Shown here one piece after another: positions 13,036 to 35,102 of a stretch of DNA of 35,102 nt (the first letter of the stretch is position 1; each line of letters opens with the position of its first letter). A program made the translations under genes and the position numbers. Source of the DNA: Macrostomum lignano (taxonomy: Eukaryota); assembly GCA_002269645.1 (NCBI GenBank), contig NIVC01004781.1:1-35102 (forward strand). The letters run 5' to 3'. Under the pieces are notes generated by a model. It had not been told where the DNA came from. It ran no database searches and was given only the letters and a program-made list of their open reading frames with translations.

Positions 13036-13112
13036 TCAATGCAGTTCCAAATCAAGCACTCATCTCACACCCAAGCCCACGTGGATTAAATTCCTCATTT
13101 CCCAAGTCTCAC

Positions 13113-13449
13113 CTGCAGCGCCAGCAACCTGCTATTGGTGCTGGTCCGCAGCCTACAGCACTGCTGCAGAGGCGCCAGAATGCTGAGCTCATCGTGATAC
13201 GGATTCCCCAAGCCTTTGCCATTGTCCAGCGTGACAACCAGCTGCTGTCCACCAATACCGGCCGCTGTCTCAAACTCGTGCCTATCAGCGTTGCCCAATA
13301 GAAAGTCTAATATCGAGGTGTCAATCAGATCAAGCAGAACGCCAGGACCCAACCGACTTAATAGCTGTGAATTGCAGGGATTCTCGCCCAGTTGCCAAGC
13401 CGCCTTGGCATCGTTCGAGGCGTAGTTCCTGGCCCAGGGGTGCCTGTGC
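13113..13449 (-). CDS. FAM20B: FAM20B-like exon 4 (catalytic segment)
   Basis: HRHPWARNY...LLDLIDTSILDFLLGNADRHEFE...LDNGKGLGNPYHDELSILAPLQQCC keeps the DRH catalytic Asp and the DN metal-binding Asp. tttccAG and GTGAGA boundaries are phase-consistent. Confidence 0.96.
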
Positions 13450-13539
13450 CTGGAAATCACGTGTTCGGGTCGGGATTGTTTGTACTTTTTTTAGTACCGT
13501 ACTTTAAAGTTGCGACAGTTAAAGTTCGCGTCATCTCCC

Positions 13540-14470
13540 TACGGACATTTGGCGCCATCGCCCTCCACAGACATTTGGCGCCATTGCCCTCCCCCCAGAT
13601 ATTTGGCGCCATAGCCTCCCTCCAGATATTTGGCGCCATAGCCTCCCTCCAGATATTTTGCGCCATAGCCTCCCTCCAGATATTTTGCGCCATCGCCCAT
13701 CCCAAGACATTTGGCGCCATTTCCCCCTCAAGACATTTGCCGCCAACTCCCCCAAAGATTTGGCGCCATAGCCCCCTCCAGATATTTGGCGCCATCGCCC
13801 ATCCCAAGACATTTGGCGCCATTTCCCCCTCAAGACATTTGCCGCCAACTCCCCCAAAGATTTGGCGCCATAGCCCCCTCCAGATATTTGGCGCCATCGC
13901 CCATCCCAAGACATTTGGCGCCATTTCCCCCTCAAGACATTTGCCGCCAACTCCAAAGATTTGGCGCCATAGCCTCCCTCCAGATATTTGGCGCCATTTT
14001 CCCCCTCAAGACATTGCCGCCAATTCCCCCAAAGATTTGGCGCCATCGCCCATCCCAAGACATTTGGCGCCATTTCCCCTCAAGACATTTGCCGCCAACT
14101 CCCCCTAAGATTTGGCGCCATCGCCCCCTCCAGATATTTGGCGCCATCGCCCATCCCAAGACATTTGGCGCCATTTCCCCCTCAAGACATTTGCCGCCAA
14201 CTCCCCCAGATATTTGGCGCCATCGCCCCCCTCCAGATATTTGGCGCCATCGCCCATCCCAAGACATTTGGCGCCATTTCCCCTCAAGACATTTGCCGCC
14301 AACTCCCCCTAAGATTTGGCGCCATCGCCCCCCTCCAGATATTTGGCGCCATTTCCCCCTCAAGACATTTGCCGCCAACTCCCCAAAGATCGTCGATTTG
14401 GCGTCATTGCCCCACCCCAAAAGTTTGGCGCCATCACCCCCAGACCAGATTCAAGAAATTTGGCGCCACC
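13540..14470. repeat. Composite TTTGGCGCCA-core minisatellite (23-27 bp subunits, ~100 bp higher-order unit), intron 3
   Basis: Recurring subunits such as ATTTGGCGCCATCGCCCATCCCAAGAC and ATTTGCCGCCAACTCCCCCAAAG. Confidence 0.95.
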
Positions 14471-14473
14471 AAC

Positions 14474-14752
14474 CTTTTCAGAGCCAGTCGATGCGGCAGC
14501 ATCAGAACGGCGACGCCTTCAAGAACTTCGTCAGGGCCGGCGCAGACCCCGGTGCGTCGGCCAGTGCAGTAGCGACAGACGCCCCACAGACAGAGCCGGT
14601 TGTCGCTCAGGCGACGATAGAAAGTCTCTCTGAGGCGAGGCGTGGCCGCCAGCGACGCTGCGGTCAGGTTTAGCAGCCGAGGCGACGCCACGGGACCGCG
14701 GTGGAAGCCCAGAAGGCGGCCAAGGTGGTAGCCAACGACCTCGGCATTGTCT
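14474..14752 (-). CDS. FAM20B: FAM20B-like exon 3
   Basis: (R)DNAEVVGYHLGRLLGF...CLWGVCRYC...VCAGPDEVLEGVAVLMLP matches FAM20B HNAEVAAFHLDRILGF...CFYGKCYYC. Phase 2 at both ends; GTTGGT donor. Confidence 0.93.
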
Positions 14753-20504: not shown

Positions 20505-21056
20505 TCAGAACACCATAGCATGCGGCCGCTGCCCAGACTTGATGCTGAACAAAGATCGCAGATAAGAGCGCAGCATCGGGCCATCACCGCTGGCCTTGAT
20601 CGCGCCCATCAGCGCCTTGTCAACGGCTGCCTGATCTTCCCGACGCTCAGCCGACACAGCGTAGGCGGCGTCCGACTTTGCGAAGATGTCGGCGCTGCCG
20701 CCAGCCGAGGCGGCCGACTTCTTAGCCGAACGCTGGCGACGGAAATAGGCGTCGTTAAGTCGCTCGGGCAGAGCGACCTTGCTGATGTCGATGCGAGTTT
20801 TAGTGCCGATTACGTAGCGTTGACTGACGCGGCGGAGAGGGCAGCCGTTAAGCTTGCGGGGTCCCGTGACCAGCAGCAGGCCGCTCTCGAGCTGCTTGAG
20901 CAGCACAACGCGCTTGCCCTTGTGCCGGCCAGCTAGCAGGATTAGGACGGCGCCAGGCGCCAGGTTGGAGCGAATACGGCGCACGTGTTTCTTGAAGGTC
21001 TTCTTCGGGCGTAGCTGAACCTTGCGGCTGGCCACCTGAGTGGGCAGCGACTTCGG
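20505..21056 (-). CDS. RPL6: 60S ribosomal protein L6 (eL6), last exon
   Basis: PGAVLILLAGRHKGKRVVLLKQLESGLLLVTGP..LNGCPLRRVSQRYVIGTKTRIDIS is the L6e KOW-domain signature. Phase-0 tttgcAG acceptor. Confidence 0.98.
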   Translation of the reverse strand, partial: PKSLPTQVASRKVQLRPKKTFKKHVRRIRSNLAPGAVLILLAGRHKGKRVVLLKQLESGLLLVTGPRKLNGCPLRRVSQRYVIGTKTRIDISKVALPERLNDAYFRRQRSAKKSAASAGGSADIFAKSDAAYAVSAERREDQAAVDKALMGAIKASGDGPMLRSYLRSLFSIKSGQRPHAMVF

Positions 21057-21069
21057 CTGCAAATCAGTG

Positions 21070-21755
21070 GGGACGACAGGATTAGTGTTTGGGGTGAGAG
21101 GATTAGTGTTTGGGGTGAGAGGATTAGTGTTTGGGGTGAGAGGATTAGTCTTTGGGGTGAGAGGATTAGTGTTTGGGGTAACAGGATTAGTGCTTGGGTT
21201 AGAGGATTACTGTTTGGGGTGAGAGGATTAGTCTTTGGTGTAACAGGATTAGTGTTTAAATGACAGGATTAGTTTTTGGGGTGAGAGGATTAGTGTTTGG
21301 GGTGAGAGGATTAGTGTTTGGGGTGGCAGGATTAGTCTTTGGGGTAACAGGATTAGTGTTTAAATGACAGGATTAGTTTTTGGGGTGAGAGGATTAGTGT
21401 TTGAGGTGAGAGGATTACTGTTTGGGGTGAGAGGATTAGTCTTTGGTGTAACAGGATTAGTGTTTAAATGACAGGATTAGTTTTTGGGGTGAGAGGATTA
21501 GTGTTTGGGGTGAGAGGATTAGTCTTTGGTGTAACAGGATTAGTGTTTAAATGACAGGATTAGTTTTTGGGGTGAGAGGATTAGTGTTTGAGGTGAGAGG
21601 ATTACTGTTTGGGGTGAGAGGATTAGTCTTTGGGGTAACAGGATTAGTGTTTAAATGACAGGATTAGTTTTTGGGGTGAGAGGATTAGAGTCTGGGGCGA
21701 GAGGATTAGTGTTTGGGGTGAGAGGATTAGAGTCTGGGGTGACAGAATTAGTCTT
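21070..21755. repeat. 21-bp minisatellite TTTGGGGTGAGAGGATTAGTG filling the RPL6 intron
   Basis: About 30 tandem units. Confidence 0.96.
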
Positions 21756-21861
21756 TAAGGGGACAAGCAGGGTGCCTGGCTTACGAGTAGAGGGCTTAGG
21801 GTTGCTAAAAACTCTCATACTTCCCACTGCAGCCTGCAGTTCACACATACAAAGCACTCAC

Positions 21862-23787: not shown

Positions 23788-24132
23788 TCAAGCAGCCTGA
23801 TCGTAGTAGCGAAATGTGGGCAACAGGGGCAGCCGGTTATCCTTAGACTGGTAGCGCCCGTGCAGCAGCCACTGGTGAAACTCGGCAGTTGCGTTACATT
23901 CGTACACGGGGAATTCCACCAGCTCGCGCGGAGTCTCCCACGAGCCGAGGATCAGCCGGCCGAACCTGTCAAATATTGCCCGGCGCTGTCTGAGGTGAAC
24001 GCGCACAGTGGCTTGAACAAATTGCAGATCTCGACCGATTTCTTGTTTAGCAAATTTCATTATCTTCGGCTCGCTGACTACTGACAGTAGTTCGAAGCGG
24101 TACGACCGGTTTAGAATGTCGTCCGTCATGCA
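23788..24132 (-). CDS. MRPL45: MRPL45 (mL45, Tim44-like) last exon
   Basis: VQATVRVHLRQRRAIFDRFGRLILGSWETPRELVEFPVYE matches [25 protein letters not shown]...PKDVLEYVVFE. Phase-0 ttttccAG acceptor; AATAAA at 23595-23590. Confidence 0.93.
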   Translation of the reverse strand, partial: CMTDDILNRSYRFELLSVVSEPKIMKFAKQEIGRDLQFVQATVRVHLRQRRAIFDRFGRLILGSWETPRELVEFPVYECNATAEFHQWLLHGRYQSKDNRLPLLPTFRYYDQAA

Positions 24133-24169
24133 CTGGAAAAATTGATAGGAGAAAATGGTGGGAAGCTGG

Positions 24170-24660
24170 GATCAACTGAGGATCTGGGAGGCTGAGTGGC
24201 AAAGCAACTGAGGATTTGGGAGGCTGGTCCTGCCCAGCAACTGAGAATCTGTGAGGCTGGCCCAGAAACTGAGGATCTGTGAGGTTGACCCAGAAACTGA
24301 GGATCTGAGGCTGGCCCAGCAACTGAGGATATGTGAGGCTGGTGGCCTAGCAACTGAGGATATGGGAGGCTGGTGGCCTAGCAACTGAGGATATGGGAGG
24401 CTGGTGGCCCAGCAACTGAGGATATGGGAGGCTGGCCCAGCAACTGAGGATCTGTGAGGCTGGTGGCCTAGCAACTGAGGATATGGGAGGCTGGCCCAGC
24501 AACTGAGGATCTGGGAGGCTGGCCCAGCAACTGAGGATCTGGGAGGCTGGCCCAGCAACTGAGGATCTGGGAAGCTGGTGTCCCAGCAACTGAGGATCTG
24601 GGAGGCTGGCCCAGCAACTGTGGATCTGGGAGGCTGGCCCGGCAAATAAGGATTTGGGAG
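24170..24660. repeat. Same 28-bp minisatellite family (plus 31-bp GGCTGGTGG variants) in MRPL45 intron 2
   Basis: Unit shared with 23040-23520, same orientation. Confidence 0.95.
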
Positions 24661-24718
24661 GTTTAGCAAAGCTCTTAAGCAAAAATTAACAAGAAAGCAT
24701 TCAATTATCGATTTATAC

Positions 24719-24776
24719 CTTGAATCCTCGCGGTGTCAAATGATTTTCAAGTAGATTTTCGGCATTCTTATTAAGA
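24719..24776 (-). CDS. MRPL45: MRPL45 58-nt internal exon (not in ORF track)
   Basis: atttcAG and GTATAA boundaries; phase 2 in, phase 0 out, exactly bridging the neighbouring exons. Reads (D)LNKNAENLLENHLTPRGFK. Confidence 0.82.
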
Positions 24777-24872
24777 CTGAAATGTGTTGAGATTGATATC
24801 AGTTCAAGATGAATAACACAGAAGTTTTAGCAAAAAAAGGAAACAATACGGCAGCAGAGCCGATATACTCAC

Positions 24873-25375
24873 TCCTGCAGCTGCTCATTAACAGACACAT
24901 AGTCATCCTGCAACAGGCGGGCCAGCTCCTCCTTGCCACCGCTAGGAATCAGATCATTATTCTTCAATAGATTCTCCGCCTCTCTATGCGAACTTTTCGG
25001 CTTCTTCTGGTCCCAGAGTCTGGCGGTTTTATTCACCAGACTGCGCAGGCCGCTGCCCTCTACAGCGTCAGCTTCTTCCATTGGTTCGAAGATCCGATCG
25101 GATGACCGATGGAACAGGCTGCCGTGCAGGAATGGCAGAGTCTGTATCTGACTGTGCGACTGCATCAGTTTAATTCGATCTGGCATACTGCGCTGCCGGC
25201 CGAATTCATCTTCAAACCAAACGCTGGGCCGATTGCGCAGCTCCGGCCCGAATTCGTGCACTCTTAATTGGCGAATTATTTTAAAGCGCGGATGCCACGG
25301 CTTGTGGCGAGCGTAGCGGACTGGCTGGAAGCCTAGCAGGATTCGGCCGCAGCCAATACAGGAGGAGGCTGAGGC
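24873..25375 (-). CDS. MRPL45: MRPL45 first coding exon; begins at a phase-0 acceptor with no ATG
   Basis: ctaac branch site and aacttgcAG|GCC TCA GCC. Reads ASASSCIGCGRILLGFQPVRYARHKPWHPRFK...; GTGAGT donor at 24872. Confidence 0.88.
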
Positions 25376-27840
25376 CTGCAAGTTAAACGAACAGGTAGTT
25401 AGGTCAGGTATCAAAAAGGGTATTTATTACAATAGGTGTATATTTAGAGATTTCATTTAGTTGCTATCTTGGCAATTTTACATCTCAAGGTTTTTAATTC
25501 ATTGAATTCCAATAATTCAGAACAAAAACTTAATTGTAACAAACCTAGATTGACTAGAGGCCAATTAAACTAAAAACTATTGGACTACAGTCTTGAAATT
25601 GCATTTGAAAAAAGTAATAGGTTTTTACCTCAGAATTATATGTTGCACTAACTTTATTTTGTAAAGTATTTTATAAGCCAAGTTATTAATGCATATACTT
25701 TCAATGCTTTTGTTTTCAATAAATGTATGCAATTTATTGTATAAATATACTATTACATTAGACTTTCTGGCACTAAAATGCAAAATTGCATCTAAGGTCT
25801 AATTTCAAGATGCGATTTGAAGTCACATTGTTATATAACTCCCCTATTCATGAATGCATAACACCCAGCTAAGCTAGCCAATCTGACTTAGCCAAGGTAA
25901 ATTGCAAAAATGCCCACCCAAAAATTACTACTATTAAACAAAACAATGAAAATTTTTGTTTAAATTATTTAAATCATTGTTATAAATTATTTAAATCATT
26001 GTTTAAATTATTAAACAATGAAATGTGGAAGCAGATGGATATTACCAATTTTTGTCCAATTTTTATATTGGATAAAGCTGCTCACCAAATATTGGGTACA
26101 TTGTCTAATTAAATAAAGGTCAATATCAGCAGTAAGTATTAGATATTTATTTGATTTGCCTATGCATTTTGTCACATCTTAGATATCTTCAAGGTCAAAA
26201 TTTATTTGAACCAAACAAAATGTATCAGCAACTCAAATAATTAACTAATACTTAATGTTGATATTGACCTTTATTTATCTACTCTTCATTAAGCGAGCCA
26301 CTTTACCTGATTTCTACATTGTCTAATTATTTTAGTTTTTTTGTCCAAATCTCAATCAATTTCTTGTCCATTTCCAATCTAGATAAGAAATGATAAGAAA
26401 AATGTATAATCTTTCATCTAGTCTATCTAAATTGCAGTAAAAAATTGAATGCAAGGCATTTGAAACAAACAAAAAATGGCTTGCAAGGTAAAATGCACAA
26501 ATTTAAGCTATACAAATGCTTTCCCTTTTATTTGCTCTTGTTTGAGGAAGATGTGCTATAGCAGCTTTGGCAAATGTAAGATGACATTAAAATCAGCAGT
26601 TATCTTAGCACTTATCTATTCTATTGAGGGTTTATTGTGATCTAGATTATAATAGAAGGCAACATTAGATGTCAAAATCAATAGACAAATGAGATAGAAG
26701 TGCATGATATTCCTATTTACTTTCTTACATCTGCAAATGTTTCAAATATTACTAAGCTTAAAAGTGAGAATGAGTTGTAACATATGTTGTACAACCTACT
26801 TTACTCAAGATGATCAGCATATAGACTTATATCCTAGTAAACTATAGTCTCCTAGAGGCCATTCCATGGAAAATTCCAGCATGCAAGAGCCTTTGGTATC
26901 CAGTGTATGGCATGTATTGCATATAAGACAAGAAGACTAAGCAAATTTAGACTAAACAAAGTGTAAATACATAATTTTTTTGCAATGATTTAACAAATTT
27001 TAAAGAAGTGGCAAACCTATTTTTGCAAAATTTTGAAGCTTAACATTTTATTTTTTTATAAATATAATACAAAGATATAAGTATGAATTTAAGTCAGTAA
27101 ATTAAAAGTTCATATTCTAATAGACTTTTTGTTTTGATTGATGTTTCATAAAATCATCACTCAGTTTCAAAATATACTCTTTCTTGCTGTTTAGAGGTTA
27201 ACCCATAGCCTGGATCATGCTGGGTGCTCACCCAAAGAAAAATTGAATATAGAAAAATGCATGCCAAAAATGTAGTATATGCCTATTCTAAAAAATATAC
27301 TGGTCATGCATTTTTGCAGCTTACCTTGGCTGGGCCCTTGCCAGCCAGCTGGATCGACTTGGTGTTACATCTGGATGATCAATATAAGGACAAAACAAGC
27401 TTAATTATGGTGTAAGGATTAAAATTCTATATGTGGCATATTTTTATTTTGAGAATAAAAGAAAAACTATAATTAGTTATATTTTTTAAAGGACTAATGC
27501 AAAATAATCTACAAGAAAAATGCTAAAAATGACATATAAAGAATGAAAATCCATTGAATAGTTCAAAAGTTATGTTAATTATAACTTGGAAAATCAGACC
27601 TTTTGAGCAAAAAATGATCACATTGCTTTATGGGAAAATTGCATTATGAAAGTATAAAAAAATATGACACTAAAAGTACTTTTTTATTACTTGACCAAAA
27701 TTCAAAAGTGAGGTGTCTTTTTACTCATACAAATAAGATCTATTATACTACATAGTTAAAAATAAGAAATTTAGAAGTTTATAAAAATCTCACTGGACCT
27801 CCTACTACCATGTGACTCTGGTCTCTGGGTCATTTGCAAA

Positions 27841-30887: not shown

Positions 30888-31718
30888 ATCTCATTACGAA
30901 CCCCTTAAATGCAATGTACACAAAAAACTCATAGAAAGAGGTGATATATAATTAAAGCTGACGATAGCAATTCAGCTGTTACAATTTCTGATATATTATA
31001 ATATATTGATTGTGTAGCTGAATGAGCTATTGCGGATATCGACCTTTGAAAAATATCGACTGAATATATTTGTAAAAGTTAAATATTAAATCGAGGTAAA
31101 CGGCCTTTATTAAAGAAAAAAAGTTTTTTTGCACTTGTTATAATAGTGTTGCTAGAACTTTTGAAAGCAAGCGAATGAAAATTATATTCACTATAAAAAA
31201 TAAAATTAGTAAATAGGCTCATGCTGGCCGAAAGAATGGGAAAAAGTATGCAATGGATTTGCCCTTATACAATTGTAAATAATTCCAAAAAATATTGCGA
31301 TTCTATTGCAATAATCGAATTTAATGCACTTAAAAAGATAATAAGATTAATAGAAAAATACTGCCGTTATTGATTCTTTTTATGAGTTAAAAATCGAAAA
31401 CTCCTCCGAAAAGCCAGAAATTCGGAAAAAATCAACGTTCAGTTTGAGCAAATAGCTTTGTTACAACAAACTAGTAAAGTACACTTCCTAGGTTAATTTT
31501 GGTTCAATTATTATTTTCTCTTTTTTCATAACGATATAGATAATCTAAAAAATTTTTTCGTGCAATTCCTTTCGTAGCATAAGGCAACTTCATGTTACAC
31601 TGTAACTTCAAAATAGATTTCCCAGATACTAAAGATTTATATACTATAATTAGATGTAGATCGAGTGTTACAGAACAGCTTAAGCATGCATTCAACTGCA
31701 TCAGCAGGTTGCAGTAAT

Positions 31719-33346
31719 TCACCGCCTTCGTAAGATGTTGAATAAATGAACAGAAAACGACACAATACAAAGTAAATTCTTGCAAAAACTCAGAAAACGG
31801 AATTCATCAGCGAGATGCCAAAGCTGCACCAGCGTGTTCATGGCGTGGTGCGGCGAATTCACCACGGGCGACACAAACATTCTTATTGTGTCGAGATGGA
31901 AACAAAAATAAAAGCAGACTGAAACAGCCAGCAGAATCCAGACAATATGGTCGAAAATCGGCATTTTTTGTTGCGCTCCGACTTGTAAGTGTGGGCTGCT
32001 CTGCCTCTGCATCATCCGTGTAAAATGAACATCGTCTGTTGTCTGCAATCGCTTTTCGTCCTTAAGTTTCCTGGCTCTCTCCAGACAGAAATTCACGTGG
32101 TTCTGACTGTCGCTGAACTCAGTCAGTGTGCGCAGCTCCTCAAAATCCTCGCTGCCAGGACTGTCCTGAAGCTCCTGGAACCAGCTGTCAGTTTGTGACT
32201 TCCTGGAGTCGGCAAGAAGCTCAGCTCCGAGACTCCACCAGAGGCAGCGGAAGTTCACGTACAGGTGGGTCGGTCCTCGCTCCGGTCTCTTGACGCAGAT
32301 CAGGGATCTGGAGAACTCGGGCAGAAACTCCATCTCCGGCAGGTTGTGGTGAATGAAGCAGAACCGCCACAGCCAGTCCGATGTGATTTCGTCAAGGTGG
32401 CGCACATTTTCAGGCGACAGAGATCTGAGAACCTTGAGCTGAATTTGTCGCTGCAGAAGCTGTTTGGCTGTGCTCTCATCTTTGGATTTCAAGTGAGCCA
32501 TGGCCATGAGACACAGCTTGGCCATCATACAGCAGTCTGGCAGTCGCTCTGCTTGACTCAGCAAGGCTTCTTTGTCCCAAATTTCAGAGCGCAGCTCACC
32601 GAGAATTTCGAACACGATGCAGTAGATGTGAGCGAACTTGTCTTGCTTAACTTCCTCCTCATCTGGAGGCACTGTCAGAGGCAGCAGGGCGAACGGGTGG
32701 AAGTGGAAGACGTCAGATTCCAACGGACTCACGGTCTCGAGAAGGTGCCGTTCTACAATCTCGATGTTGTTCTTAATCTCAATCAGTTTTTCAAGGATTT
32801 CAACTTTTGATTTCAAAAAGGGGCCGCCGATTCCAGCATTTTTGACATATAAAAATGCGCCAGGAATGAAGAAGTGCGGCATACAAATGTCAGTACAGCC
32901 TTTGGCTTCCATCAGTTCAATCATCGTGTTTAAAGCCTTTGCTAGCAGGCTCCTGAGGTTCTCCCGACTCCAAGCGTCGCTAGGAAAAGTATGCAGAATG
33001 AAGAACATCAAAGTTCTAGCATGGTATGTCTTAAGCCCGGAGAGATGATACACTCTTGGTAAAAGCCTCTTAAAGATGAACTTGATGAGCACGAATAGCT
33101 GACCCTGGGTCTCGCTCAGGCCTCTCATGGTCTCCTTCTCATGAAAGCTGAAACTCACTCTCATCTCGTTGTCTGAGTTAGGTCTGGTAGCAGTCACCAG
33201 GTGCACCTTCATCGCTGATGCACCTGCTGGAAGCAGCTTCTGAACTCTCTTTGGGTGAGTGAGACTGCCACAGCACTGGTACGCATGGCATGTGTCTTCA
33301 GCAGGTCGAACTCCGCAAGCGTCCGCTGCCACCGCCGGCTGGCTTC
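31719..33346 (-). CDS. Mab-21/cGAS-like receptor (cGLR-type) gene, last exon: C-terminal NTase lobe, helical region and hydrophobic tail
   Basis: Phase-1 gttccAG acceptor after a 77-nt intron. Motifs EDTCHAYQC, VHLVTA, EMRVSFSFHEK, LIKFIFK, LKTYHARTLMF and MPHFFIPG follow the Mab-21 pattern (D.V.A..C, HLVP, WRLSFS..EK, L.SYHLKT, LPHYFIP). Confidence 0.85.
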
Positions 33347-33423
33347 CTGGAACAGGAATTCCGGAGCGGTTTGCGAATCCAATTTTGTTATATTATTAGT
33401 TTATTAGCTGATTAGCTACTTAC

Positions 33424-33803
33424 CTGCAGGGGACTGTATCTGTGCGTGACCATCAATGATGCTTAGCGTTTTAGCCTCACCACATCGGCAACTGCCCTCA
33501 AGATGAAACACCAGCTGCATATTTTTGTCTTCATCTTCCTCTTGTAAGCCAACGATGACTGTCCAGTCAATGTCGGAGTCGGCAGCGGTCAGTCCATTCA
33601 CCTGCTTCAGACTGTTGCCCCATCCGTCTGCGTAGCTGCCAGTCATGCTCCTGCCGTCTTTGGTGATGATGCCAGCCAGGGTCTCCAAAAAGTCAGCCAA
33701 TCTCTGCTGCTGCTTGGCCCGCTCGCGAGTGAAGCCTGCGCTGCTGAGAATTCTGCTCAGACTTTCACCGCGCGTCAGGTTTCCGGGACTCTGTAGGATT
33801 TCG
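33424..33803 (-). CDS. cGLR-type gene exon with nucleotidyltransferase catalytic motifs
   Basis: tctacAG phase 2 in, GTAAGT phase 1 out. MTGSYADG...ADSDIDWTVIV is the GS-x-D-x-D pol-beta-superfamily motif. Confidence 0.88.
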
Positions 33804-34368
33804 CTGTAGATAGCCAGCAGTTTAAGGAAGAATTTTATGAGAGGTATTCAATACAAGCATGCTCAGAGAACGGACTCATCAATGAGCTCAATGTAAATTA
33901 ATCCCATGAGCCTAATCATAAAATATCATTAATAGTCATCGAATAGGAAAGACGTCGAAGAGCACTTCATCAAGACTAAGGCAAGTCAAAGACAATGATA
34001 AGCCTCACTCACTAAAATCCACAGGAAAAGAACAAAGTTTCACTCAAAGTCCCATGAAGTTCATCAAGACTATGTTGCTTTGATACTTTGGTGCTGTGAG
34101 AGAAAAGTAAGACGCTACTTTGGATTAAAGACAGAAAAGTTGAGTACAGTGGTTTAGAAGTTTTAGCAAAATATTTTTAATGAACCGTTTGATCTCTTGG
34201 GGTTGTAAATTTTGCCAAATTGAATCTGGCAGTAAAGTGCCTATTATTGCCTATTGCCTATTCAGGTCTAAAGAAATAAAAGTGACTTCACAGAAAAAGA
34301 GGGACTCATTGAAAAATATGGACTCCTCCACCCTTAATATCAAGAAATCGTCAAATCGAAATACTTAC

Positions 34369-34802
34369 GGCTGTTCTGGTGTGCTTTTTAACTTGAGTCG
34401 GTGTTGAAGCAGTCTCAATAGGTCTCTCTGCTTGTAAAGCTGTGCCAGTTTGAGGCAGTCGCGTCCTCCACGATCTCTAAGCTGCAAATTTGCCTCTGAA
34501 CCCAACAGAGTCATCGCGACTCTCAGGTGGCCTCTGACGCACGCCTTGGCCAGTGCTGATTGGCCAGTTTCATCCACCGCATCGATGTCGGTGCCCGGTG
34601 AGCCGAGAATTTGTTTCACCAGCTCGTGATGTCCGGCCAGCGCTGCCACCATCAGACAGGTAAGTCTGCCTTTATACAAGTAGCTCATGTTTGCGTATTT
34701 GATAACCGCACTGGCAAGGGACACGAATCCCTCTGACATGCTTTTGTAAAGCACGGCAGCGATTATCCCTGCACATTCTCTTCTTAGATCAGCATCAGAT
34801 AT
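34369..34802 (-). CDS. Ankyrin-repeat part of the same gene (3' half of a large exon)
   Basis: TCLMVAALAGHHELVKQIL..PGTDIDAVDETGQSALAKACVRGHLRVAMTLL..EANLQLRDRGGRDCL are ankyrin repeats. The phase-2 GTAAGT donor at 34368 joins the NTase exon. Confidence 0.88.
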
Positions 34803-35102
34803 TCCTTGAGGCTCTTGGATTCTTCAACGCAGCTTAACTCGTGAAAAATAAAGTCGATAAGCTCAAAGTCGCCGTGAAGAGCCTCGTTTGCCAAATAATG
34901 CAGGATGTCAGGGTCAGTGAAATCCGGCTTGAATTTAGACTGCACAATGTAGCACACGATTTCTTTGTTTCTACCTTTGAGAGCTCCAACAAAGGCCTTG
35001 TGATGGCACTGCTTCAGAATCCTAGCATGTCGCTCATTAACTAAACCGAGCAGCCTCAGTAGCAGGTCTAGTGGTCCACACTTTCCAAAGAGGCACGCAG
35101 CT
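34802..35102 (-). CDS. Upstream helical/ankyrin-like part, one base out of frame with the ankyrin segment; continues beyond window
   Basis: Open frame from 35101: AACLFGKCGPLDLLLRLL...KAFVGALKGRNKEIVCYIV...LANEALHGDFELIDFIF...KSLKE, stopping at 34786-34784. Confidence 0.7.

Follow-up and report, generated by a model that had tools for sequence, protein, structure and literature searches.

The window analysed here was the whole of contig NIVC01004781.1 (35,102 bp) in the Macrostomum lignano assembly GCA_002269645.1. At positions 31719-35102, on the minus strand, it carries a gene whose predicted product joins ankyrin repeats, a cGAS-like (Mab-21) nucleotidyltransferase (NTase) domain and a mostly helical C-terminal domain in a single polypeptide (Table 1). 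Three-frame translation of 35102-31700, together with inspection of the splice sites, gave three exons and two introns with an open joined frame. The spliced product corresponded to GenBank PAA46602.1 (BOX15_Mlig015886g1; 792 aa) and was identical to it at every junction. An earlier interpretation made from the DNA letters alone (the sequence-only reading) had claimed that phase-consistent splicing connects the ankyrin exon with the Mab-21 exons, and the canonical GT..AG introns and matching junctions agreed with this. The M. lignano annotation was generated from RNA-seq and transcript assemblies via StringTie, TACO and TBONE, followed by TransDecoder (PMC5730564). The GenBank model was thus derived from transcripts, and it therefore provides indirect transcript support for the co-splicing of the ankyrin and enzyme exons. 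The intron positions were also kept in a paralogous locus (L001, 48% identical), including the separation of the ankyrin and NTase exons, and the position of intron 2 (GAG/SQPAV) was common to L001 and to a relative on an environmental contig (L005).

Table 1. Features of the ankyrin-NTase gene in the window (positions on contig NIVC01004781.1).
Feature	Position	Strand	Remarks
Annotated coding sequence	34739..31719	minus	start ATG 34739-34737
Upstream coding segment	34819..35101	minus	other frame than exon A; putative degenerate ankyrin-like helical repeats; exits contig end
Frameshift site, CC run	34817..34818	minus	one base fewer than near-identical copies imply
Exon A, ankyrin repeats	34369..34817	minus	Pfam Ank_2 match about 34655-34404
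Intron 1	34368-33804	minus	565 nt, GTAAGT...CAG, codon split 2+1; junction STPEQ/PEILQ identical in PAA46602.1
Exon B	33803-33424	minus	N-terminal spine helices and first part of the NTase N-lobe
Exon B motifs	GS 33640-33635; D-I-D 33574-33566	minus	also start of the Cys/His-rich insert (FHLEGSCRC...GH)
Intron 2	33423-33347	minus	77 nt, GTAAGT...CAG, codon split 1+2
Exon C	33346 to stop at 31719	minus	remaining NTase core, C-lobe, C-terminal domain and tail
Exon C, first part: remainder of NTase core and Mab-21 C-lobe	32730..33346	minus	predicted third catalytic Asp 33296-33294
Exon C motifs	RVSFS 33161-33147; YHART 33026-33012; PHFF 32879-32868	minus	aligned to cGAS motifs
Pfam Mab-21_C match	about 33050-32859	minus	within exon C
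Conserved C-terminal domain, ~245 aa	31995..32729	minus	mostly helical, small beta element
Tail of the open reading frame and stop codon	31719..31994	minus	AT-rich, without homology to paralogues

The ankyrin part of the spliced protein was recognised by Pfam as Ank_2 (E 1.3e-10), Ank (9.2e-7) and Ank_4 (6.3e-6). In the enzyme part, Mab-21_C (PF20266) passed narrowly, with 24.5-25.2 bits against a cut-off of 24.1, and it was matched in 29 of 30 family members. When the single sequence was compared with the PDB, cGAS, MB21D2 and cGLR1 were matched no better than weakly (E about 0.02). A profile of 11 family sequences reached cGAS at 1.6e-4, and a profile of the enzyme domain built from 30 sequences reached Sp-cGLR1 (8gjy) at 1.4e-8, cGAS at 8e-7 and MAB21L1 at 1.2e-4. 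The profile alignments set RVSFS..EK against RLSFS..EK of cGAS, YHAKT against YHVKT, and PHFF against HYFI. The family alignment was also compared by hhalign with seven cnidarian and mollusc cGAS-like receptors (cGLRs) taken from Table S3 of Li et al. 2023 (PMC9980059); the probability was 99.15% and the E-value 3.7e-19 over 286 columns, nearly the whole domain. In that alignment GS was paired with GS, SD-ID with DEFD, and RPAxD with the VDLVPA aspartate of the screened cGLRs. The motifs TGSYADG, DSDID and EDTCHAY named in the sequence-only reading were all present, and the Asp of EDTCHAY, put forward there as a candidate third acidic residue, was the residue aligned with the VDLVPA aspartate. 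The protein is thus predicted, from alignment and model, to carry a complete catalytic set (GS, D-x-D and third Asp) at the canonical positions, corresponding to G179-S180, D201-I-D203 and D268 of PAA46602.1.

The first AlphaFold model (577 aa, 11 sequences) had a mean predicted local distance difference test (pLDDT) score of 71; its catalytic core stayed under 50 and Foldseek scored it weakly, with MB21D2, MAB21L1, cGAS and Sp-cGLR1 as the best PDB matches. A second model, limited to the 332-aa enzyme domain, took its place, and the 30-sequence alignment used for it included distant members from an exhaustive profile search. This second model reached a pLDDT of 90.0 and a predicted template modelling (TM) score of 0.91. 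Foldseek against the PDB yielded 79 matches at E<=1e-3 (best E 6.7e-9), and the best 50 of these 79 were exclusively cGAS, MAB21L1, MB21D2 or Sp-cGLR1, with TM-scores of 0.5-0.6 over ~385 aligned columns. In the numbering of the model, strand 51-54 is followed by the GS at 55-56, D77 and D79 stand at the start of strand 77-84, and D144 is part of strand 142-151; as modelled, this placement is the Pol-beta NTase arrangement. The predicted structure accordingly showed the bilobal fold of a cGAS-type Pol-beta nucleotidyltransferase, and the cGAS-like fold anticipated for the enzyme domain was recovered. The fusion of such an enzyme to ankyrin repeats, which was the central claim of the sequence-only reading, was upheld by the Pfam, hhalign and Foldseek results, and the gene has the architecture of an ANK-cGLR fusion, in which a single open reading frame (ORF) encodes both the ankyrin repeats and the cGLR NTase.

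Human and mouse cGAS, Sp-cGLR1 (PDB 5vdw, 6ct9 and 8gjy) and Drosophila cGLR1 share with the window protein the bilobal Mab-21 NTase fold and the catalytic and nucleotide-contact motifs. The cGAS and Sp-cGLR1 structures were matched by Foldseek at E 6.7e-9 to 4.5e-7 with TM-scores of 0.5-0.6, at an identity of only 12-20%. The window protein differs from them by its additional ankyrin and C-terminal domains and by its near-neutral isoelectric point (pI; not >8.5), which was 7.3 for the enzyme domain (family median 7.4) and 6.1 with the C-terminal domain included. The zinc thumb of cGAS, H(X5)CC(X6)C, lies in the C-lobe, and alignment to cGAS revealed no His/Cys insert of this type in the C-lobe of the window protein. 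Because the pI is 7.3, a C-lobe zinc thumb is lacking and the conserved Cys and His residues lie mainly in the N-lobe, the protein was assigned to the cGLRs and not regarded as a cGAS orthologue. MAB21L1 and MB21D2 (PDB 5eom and 7lt1) have the same fold and comparable structural scores; in the window protein, unlike MAB21L1/2/3, the GS motif and the three acidic residues are all present.

The N-lobe insert (about 33505-33270, minus strand) is family-specific and lies between the DxD strand and the strand of the third Asp. Its conserved His and Cys residues are H224, C229, H243, C275 and C276 of PAA46602.1, with the consensus HLxGxCxC ... GH ... CC. This pattern suggests that the insert could be a metal-binding element, located elsewhere than the zinc thumb of cGAS.

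The exhaustive profile search returned 700 cluster representatives at E<=1e-3 and 89 at E<=1e-30, and a search for paralogues, which had been called for earlier, thus uncovered a large family. Ten representatives were looked up. All eight strong matches (E down to 1e-38) were from M. lignano; the other two, at about 1e-13, were weak matches confined to the C-lobe, one of them a bivalve Mab-21 protein and the other an unnamed ENA protein. The layout of ankyrin repeats, NTase and C-terminal domain recurred in more than 20 paralogue models. Among 58 non-redundant NTase domains of the family, with a median identity of 32% to the window protein, 51 kept the G-S/D/D/D residues. In the 30-member alignment (27-54% identity) G55, S56, D77, D79, D144, R189, S191, K215, K219 and Y234 were invariant, as were the cGAS-like nucleotide-contact motifs RxSFS..EK and YHxKT. 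Several degenerate members had been dropped when that alignment was chosen, and 51/58 is the unbiased count. The conservation of the catalytic residues over such large divergence argues for selection on catalysis.

The remaining seven domains (P0037, P0038, P0040, P0064, P0091, P0108 and P0162) had lost at least one catalytic residue, and the alignments suggest a family radiation in which pseudo-enzymes probably stand alongside predicted active members. One M. lignano member (P0036, 1346 aa) contained two tandem NTase domains, at residues 16-317 and 763-1057; this multi-cGLR fusion resembles OAS2 and OAS3 in its tandem NTase layout. The environmental relative mentioned above (L005; JGI metagenome 3300040801, 3.2-kb contig, positions 603-2495) was 46-51% identical and had intact GS, SDID and RPAQD motifs. 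Its occurrence there indicates that the family exists outside the M. lignano data sets, and its source was presumably another macrostomid-like animal.

The helical stretch of ~250 aa noticed behind the NTase domain proved to be real and conserved among the paralogues. This C-terminal domain of ~245 aa showed 34-43% identity across paralogues with 39 invariant columns, and it was mostly helical in the 577-aa model, where the block means of pLDDT were mostly about 62-94. Searched with a family profile of the domain, the PDB returned nothing at E<=10; Pfam assigned no family, its scattered matches all falling below threshold, and the structural search gave only weak TPR-like Foldseek matches. From the sequence and profile comparisons, the domain is a family-specific module with no detectable relatives outside the family.

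The assignment of the window gene to the cGLRs is well supported by these results. It belongs to a large lineage-specific family in M. lignano with ankyrin, cGAS-type NTase and helical C-terminal modules, and by analogy its product would probably synthesise cyclic nucleotides when activated by a ligand. As in cGAS and the characterised cGLRs, the protein would be held inactive in the cytosol. Binding of a ligand at the back face of the enzyme domain, at the ankyrin and C-terminal modules, or at both would order the GS activation loop; the two-metal site would then condense two nucleoside triphosphates into a cyclic di- or oligonucleotide second messenger, and this signal would activate a receptor further down the pathway. 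The protein's near-neutral charge, together with the presence of two additional interaction modules, points mildly to a ligand or partner that is not long double-stranded nucleic acid. The cGLRs that sense dsDNA or dsRNA have a pI >8.5, and other ligands have been suggested for acidic cGLRs (PMC9980059). That the ankyrin array might act as a protein sensor, as was proposed at the outset, is a speculation for which there are two supporting data, namely the pI of 7.3 and 6.1 compared with >8.5 and the lack of any flatworm among the 15 active enzymes with nucleic-acid ligands.

Several observations weigh against the assignment to an active cGLR. The Pfam family Mab-21 (PF03281), which represents the N-terminal half of the NTase, was matched in none of the 30 members at E<=0.01. 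The N-lobe carries the Cys/His-rich insert of ~60 aa, and its spacing from GS to DxD is 20 residues, longer than the 11 residues of cGAS. In the window copy the frame is shifted by 1 nt, the 5' end is cut off and the tail is not homologous to the paralogues. The 15 active enzymes of Li et al. came from insects, anemones, molluscs, hydras and corals, with no flatworm among them (PMC9980059), and our literature search found no enzymatic activity reported for any flatworm cGLR. Finally, the loss of both cGAS and STING has been reported for flatworms, from Schistosoma only (PMC4117786).

The frameshift bears on whether this particular copy is functional. Upstream of exon A there is an open frame of 105 codons (35101-34787) that overlaps exon A in another frame. 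It had no Pfam match on its own; read by eye and from the paralogues, it appears to encode degenerate ankyrin-like repeats. In near-identical proteins of another M. lignano data set, P0029 and P0031 read FHELSCVEESQEPQGISD straight into exon A, and P0002 reads VEELQEPQG. At the corresponding site the window has GAA TCC AAG AGC (frame 1) or ATC CAA GAG CCT (frame 0), where P0029 encodes VEESQEPQG. The two frames join with zero residues missing compared with P0029 and P0002, which indicates a deletion of 1 nt in the C-run, and this frameshift explains why translation in the deposited model begins only with the Met at 34739. A mini-intron at the change of frame (34823-34787) was considered and ruled out, as the frames join without loss of residues relative to P0029 and P0002. 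The coding region exits the contig at 35102, and the true N-terminus and the upstream ankyrin-like repeats are absent from the GenBank model. At the other end, homology to the paralogues ends near TRMMQRQSS (31995), about where the paralogues themselves end, and the ORF goes on for ~90 codons (31994-31722); the GC content falls to 0.33 in 31001-32000.

One alternative is that the family is functional overall but that the window carries a dead copy of it, either a duplicate or an allele, which would be a pseudogene or an assembly haplotig. The shifted frame relative to near-identical copies, the truncation by the contig end and the ~90 codons of AT-rich sequence without paralogue homology all favour it. 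However, the 2.4 kb of coding sequence downstream of the shift are open over three exons with canonical splice sites and intact conserved motifs, a one-base difference in a short homopolymer is a typical PacBio indel error, and the deposited model comes from transcripts. The assembly was made from PacBio reads with Canu and polished with Pilon, and it contains ~180 Mb of near-identical duplicated blocks (PMC5730564). An assembly indel at the C-run is plausible, and a decayed duplicate is likewise possible, but on balance we consider it unlikely that this copy is non-functional.

The tail contains a hydrophobic stretch, IVWILLAVSVCFYFCF (31946-31899), with a Kyte-Doolittle maximum of 2.06. In the paralogue P0016, a strongly hydrophobic segment resembling a tail anchor, ILALHFLIVVVLIVIVIFV, lies six residues from the C-terminus. 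From these sequences, some family members may be membrane-anchored, or such tails may be read-through of the annotation. A tail anchor in the window gene itself was not retained as an explanation, since a convincing segment was present in P0016 only.

A second alternative accepts the cGAS fold and gives the protein a non-enzymatic role, as a scaffold or adaptor that works through its ankyrin and C-terminal domains, as has been proposed for MAB21L1/2. No flatworm enzyme appeared among the reported active cGLRs despite five cloned constructs, MAB21L1 and MB21D2 are among the nearest structures, and the loss of catalytic residues in seven of the 58 family domains shows that the fold can persist without them. 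On the other hand, retention of G-S, D-x-D and the third Asp in 51 of the 58, and their invariance in the 30-member alignment, are hard to explain without selection for catalysis, and the RxSFS and YHxKT nucleotide-contact motifs were invariant as well. MAB21L1/2/3 have been described as lacking a predicted functional active site (PMC9980059), which sets them apart from the window protein. A purely structural role thus seems quite improbable.

It is still less probable that the protein is an active NTase with a chemistry other than cyclic-dinucleotide synthesis, such as OAS-like linear 2'-5' oligonucleotides or nucleotide transfer to RNA or protein: the Pol-beta NTase triad is common to OAS, terminal uridylyl and adenylyl transferases and CD-NTases, the N-lobe is divergent with its family-specific insert, and GLD-2, URT1, DncV and OASL were weaker Foldseek matches of the lower-confidence model, but the best 50 structural matches of the confident model were all cGAS, cGLR or Mab-21 proteins and the sequence profiles matched that family only.

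The reading of the window gene as a ligand-activated cGLR can be set against what has been catalogued. Li et al. 2023 surveyed more than 3,000 cGLRs, of which 87% were stand-alone enzymes and some carried TPR or ankyrin modules (Fig. 1C/S2A; PMC9980059). ANK-cGLR fusions were named there as a class, with the repeats proposed to mediate protein or ligand interactions (PMC9980059). Their domain table includes M. lignano proteins with Ank_2, and their Table S3 lists five M. lignano constructs, among them PAA68676.1 (= P0009) and PAA93208.1, both of the window-gene family (PMC9980059). The text is silent on whether the cloned flatworm constructs were inactive or merely not followed up, and M. lignano is not in the table of cGLR and STING counts (PMC9980059). 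PAA46602.1 was not found in the part of the supplementary text of Li et al. 2023 that was accessible (PMC9980059), and a literature search on flatworm cGLR function gave nothing beyond that study. The suggestion that this architecture is uncharacterised in flatworms therefore stands for activity, as no activity of a flatworm cGLR has been reported, and falls for the architecture itself, as the ANK-cGLR class and M. lignano examples were already listed (PMC9980059). The window gene is a further copy within a large catalogued family, and its kind is not new.

PAA68676.1 (BOX15_Mlig016402g1, construct #93) and PAA93208.1 (BOX15_Mlig001946g3, construct #92) are proteins of the same species and family, 45-47% identical to the window protein. 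They have the same order of ankyrin repeats, NTase and C-terminal domain and the motifs GS, SDIDW and RPAxD. The window gene differs from these two in belonging to a sub-branch, shared with P0002 and P0029-31, in which a short acidic insert follows the DxD strand and the C-terminal tail is different. The ANK-cGLRs of Stylophora pistillata likewise combine a cGLR NTase core with ankyrin repeats in one polypeptide; they belong to another phylum, and the flatworm family adds the C-terminal domain and the Cys/His-rich N-lobe insert.

A broader proposal is that the ankyrin-cGLRs with the C-terminal domain form a very large radiation specific to the M. lignano lineage, counting some 90 clusters at 50% identity and with 51 of the 58 sampled NTase domains predicted to be active, and that protein or other non-nucleic-acid ligands activate the enzyme core via the ankyrin and C-terminal modules. 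This would take place in a phylum for which loss of cGAS-STING has otherwise been reported. We regard this proposal as doubtful; if true, it would mean that a STING has been kept or that another receptor takes up the nucleotide signal. Among the innate-immune sensors of animals the cGLRs form a major family, and ligands are known only for those that sense nucleic acids. About 13% of cGLRs carry extra domains, and flatworms are commonly listed among the animals that lost the pathway. The laboratory flatworm M. lignano, which is transgenic, amenable to RNA interference and equipped with dozens of predicted-active ankyrin-cGLRs, would be a practical system for finding non-nucleic-acid ligands of cGLRs and the receivers of their signals. 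The single gene in the window adds little to this, and the whole family is the worthwhile target.

A partner gene (STING, TIR or death domain) was sought around the window gene and two paralogues and none was found; apart from unannotated genes, the neighbours were a retroelement and a ribosomal protein gene. In the window, the gene is followed downstream by ~6 kb of AT-rich sequence, with a GC content of 0.30-0.39 across 25.5-31.7 kb. Next to this lies an annotated gene of 298 aa (about 23788-25366, minus strand) with no Pfam family, and its largest exon ORF (24869-25414) was likewise without a match. A gene for ribosomal protein L6e has its last exon at 20505-21062 (minus strand; Pfam Ribosomal_L6e, E 6.1e-35), and a tandem array of 21-bp units (21078-21756) adjoins this exon. 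Further along, a Fam20C-like (Golgi casein kinase) gene was recognised from exons at 13095-13460 and 14434-14700 (minus strand; E 7.1e-34 and 1.2e-4). Its introns are filled with arrays of 20-33-bp units, and the intron between the two exons consists almost wholly of 27-bp/102-bp tandem repeats (13537-14377). Altogether, at least 15 tandem-repeat arrays were found between 142 and 24661, with units of 6 to about 190 bp (mostly 17-33 bp) and lengths of 0.2-1.1 kb each. They occupy much of the first 25 kb of the window and create long spurious ORFs in several frames.

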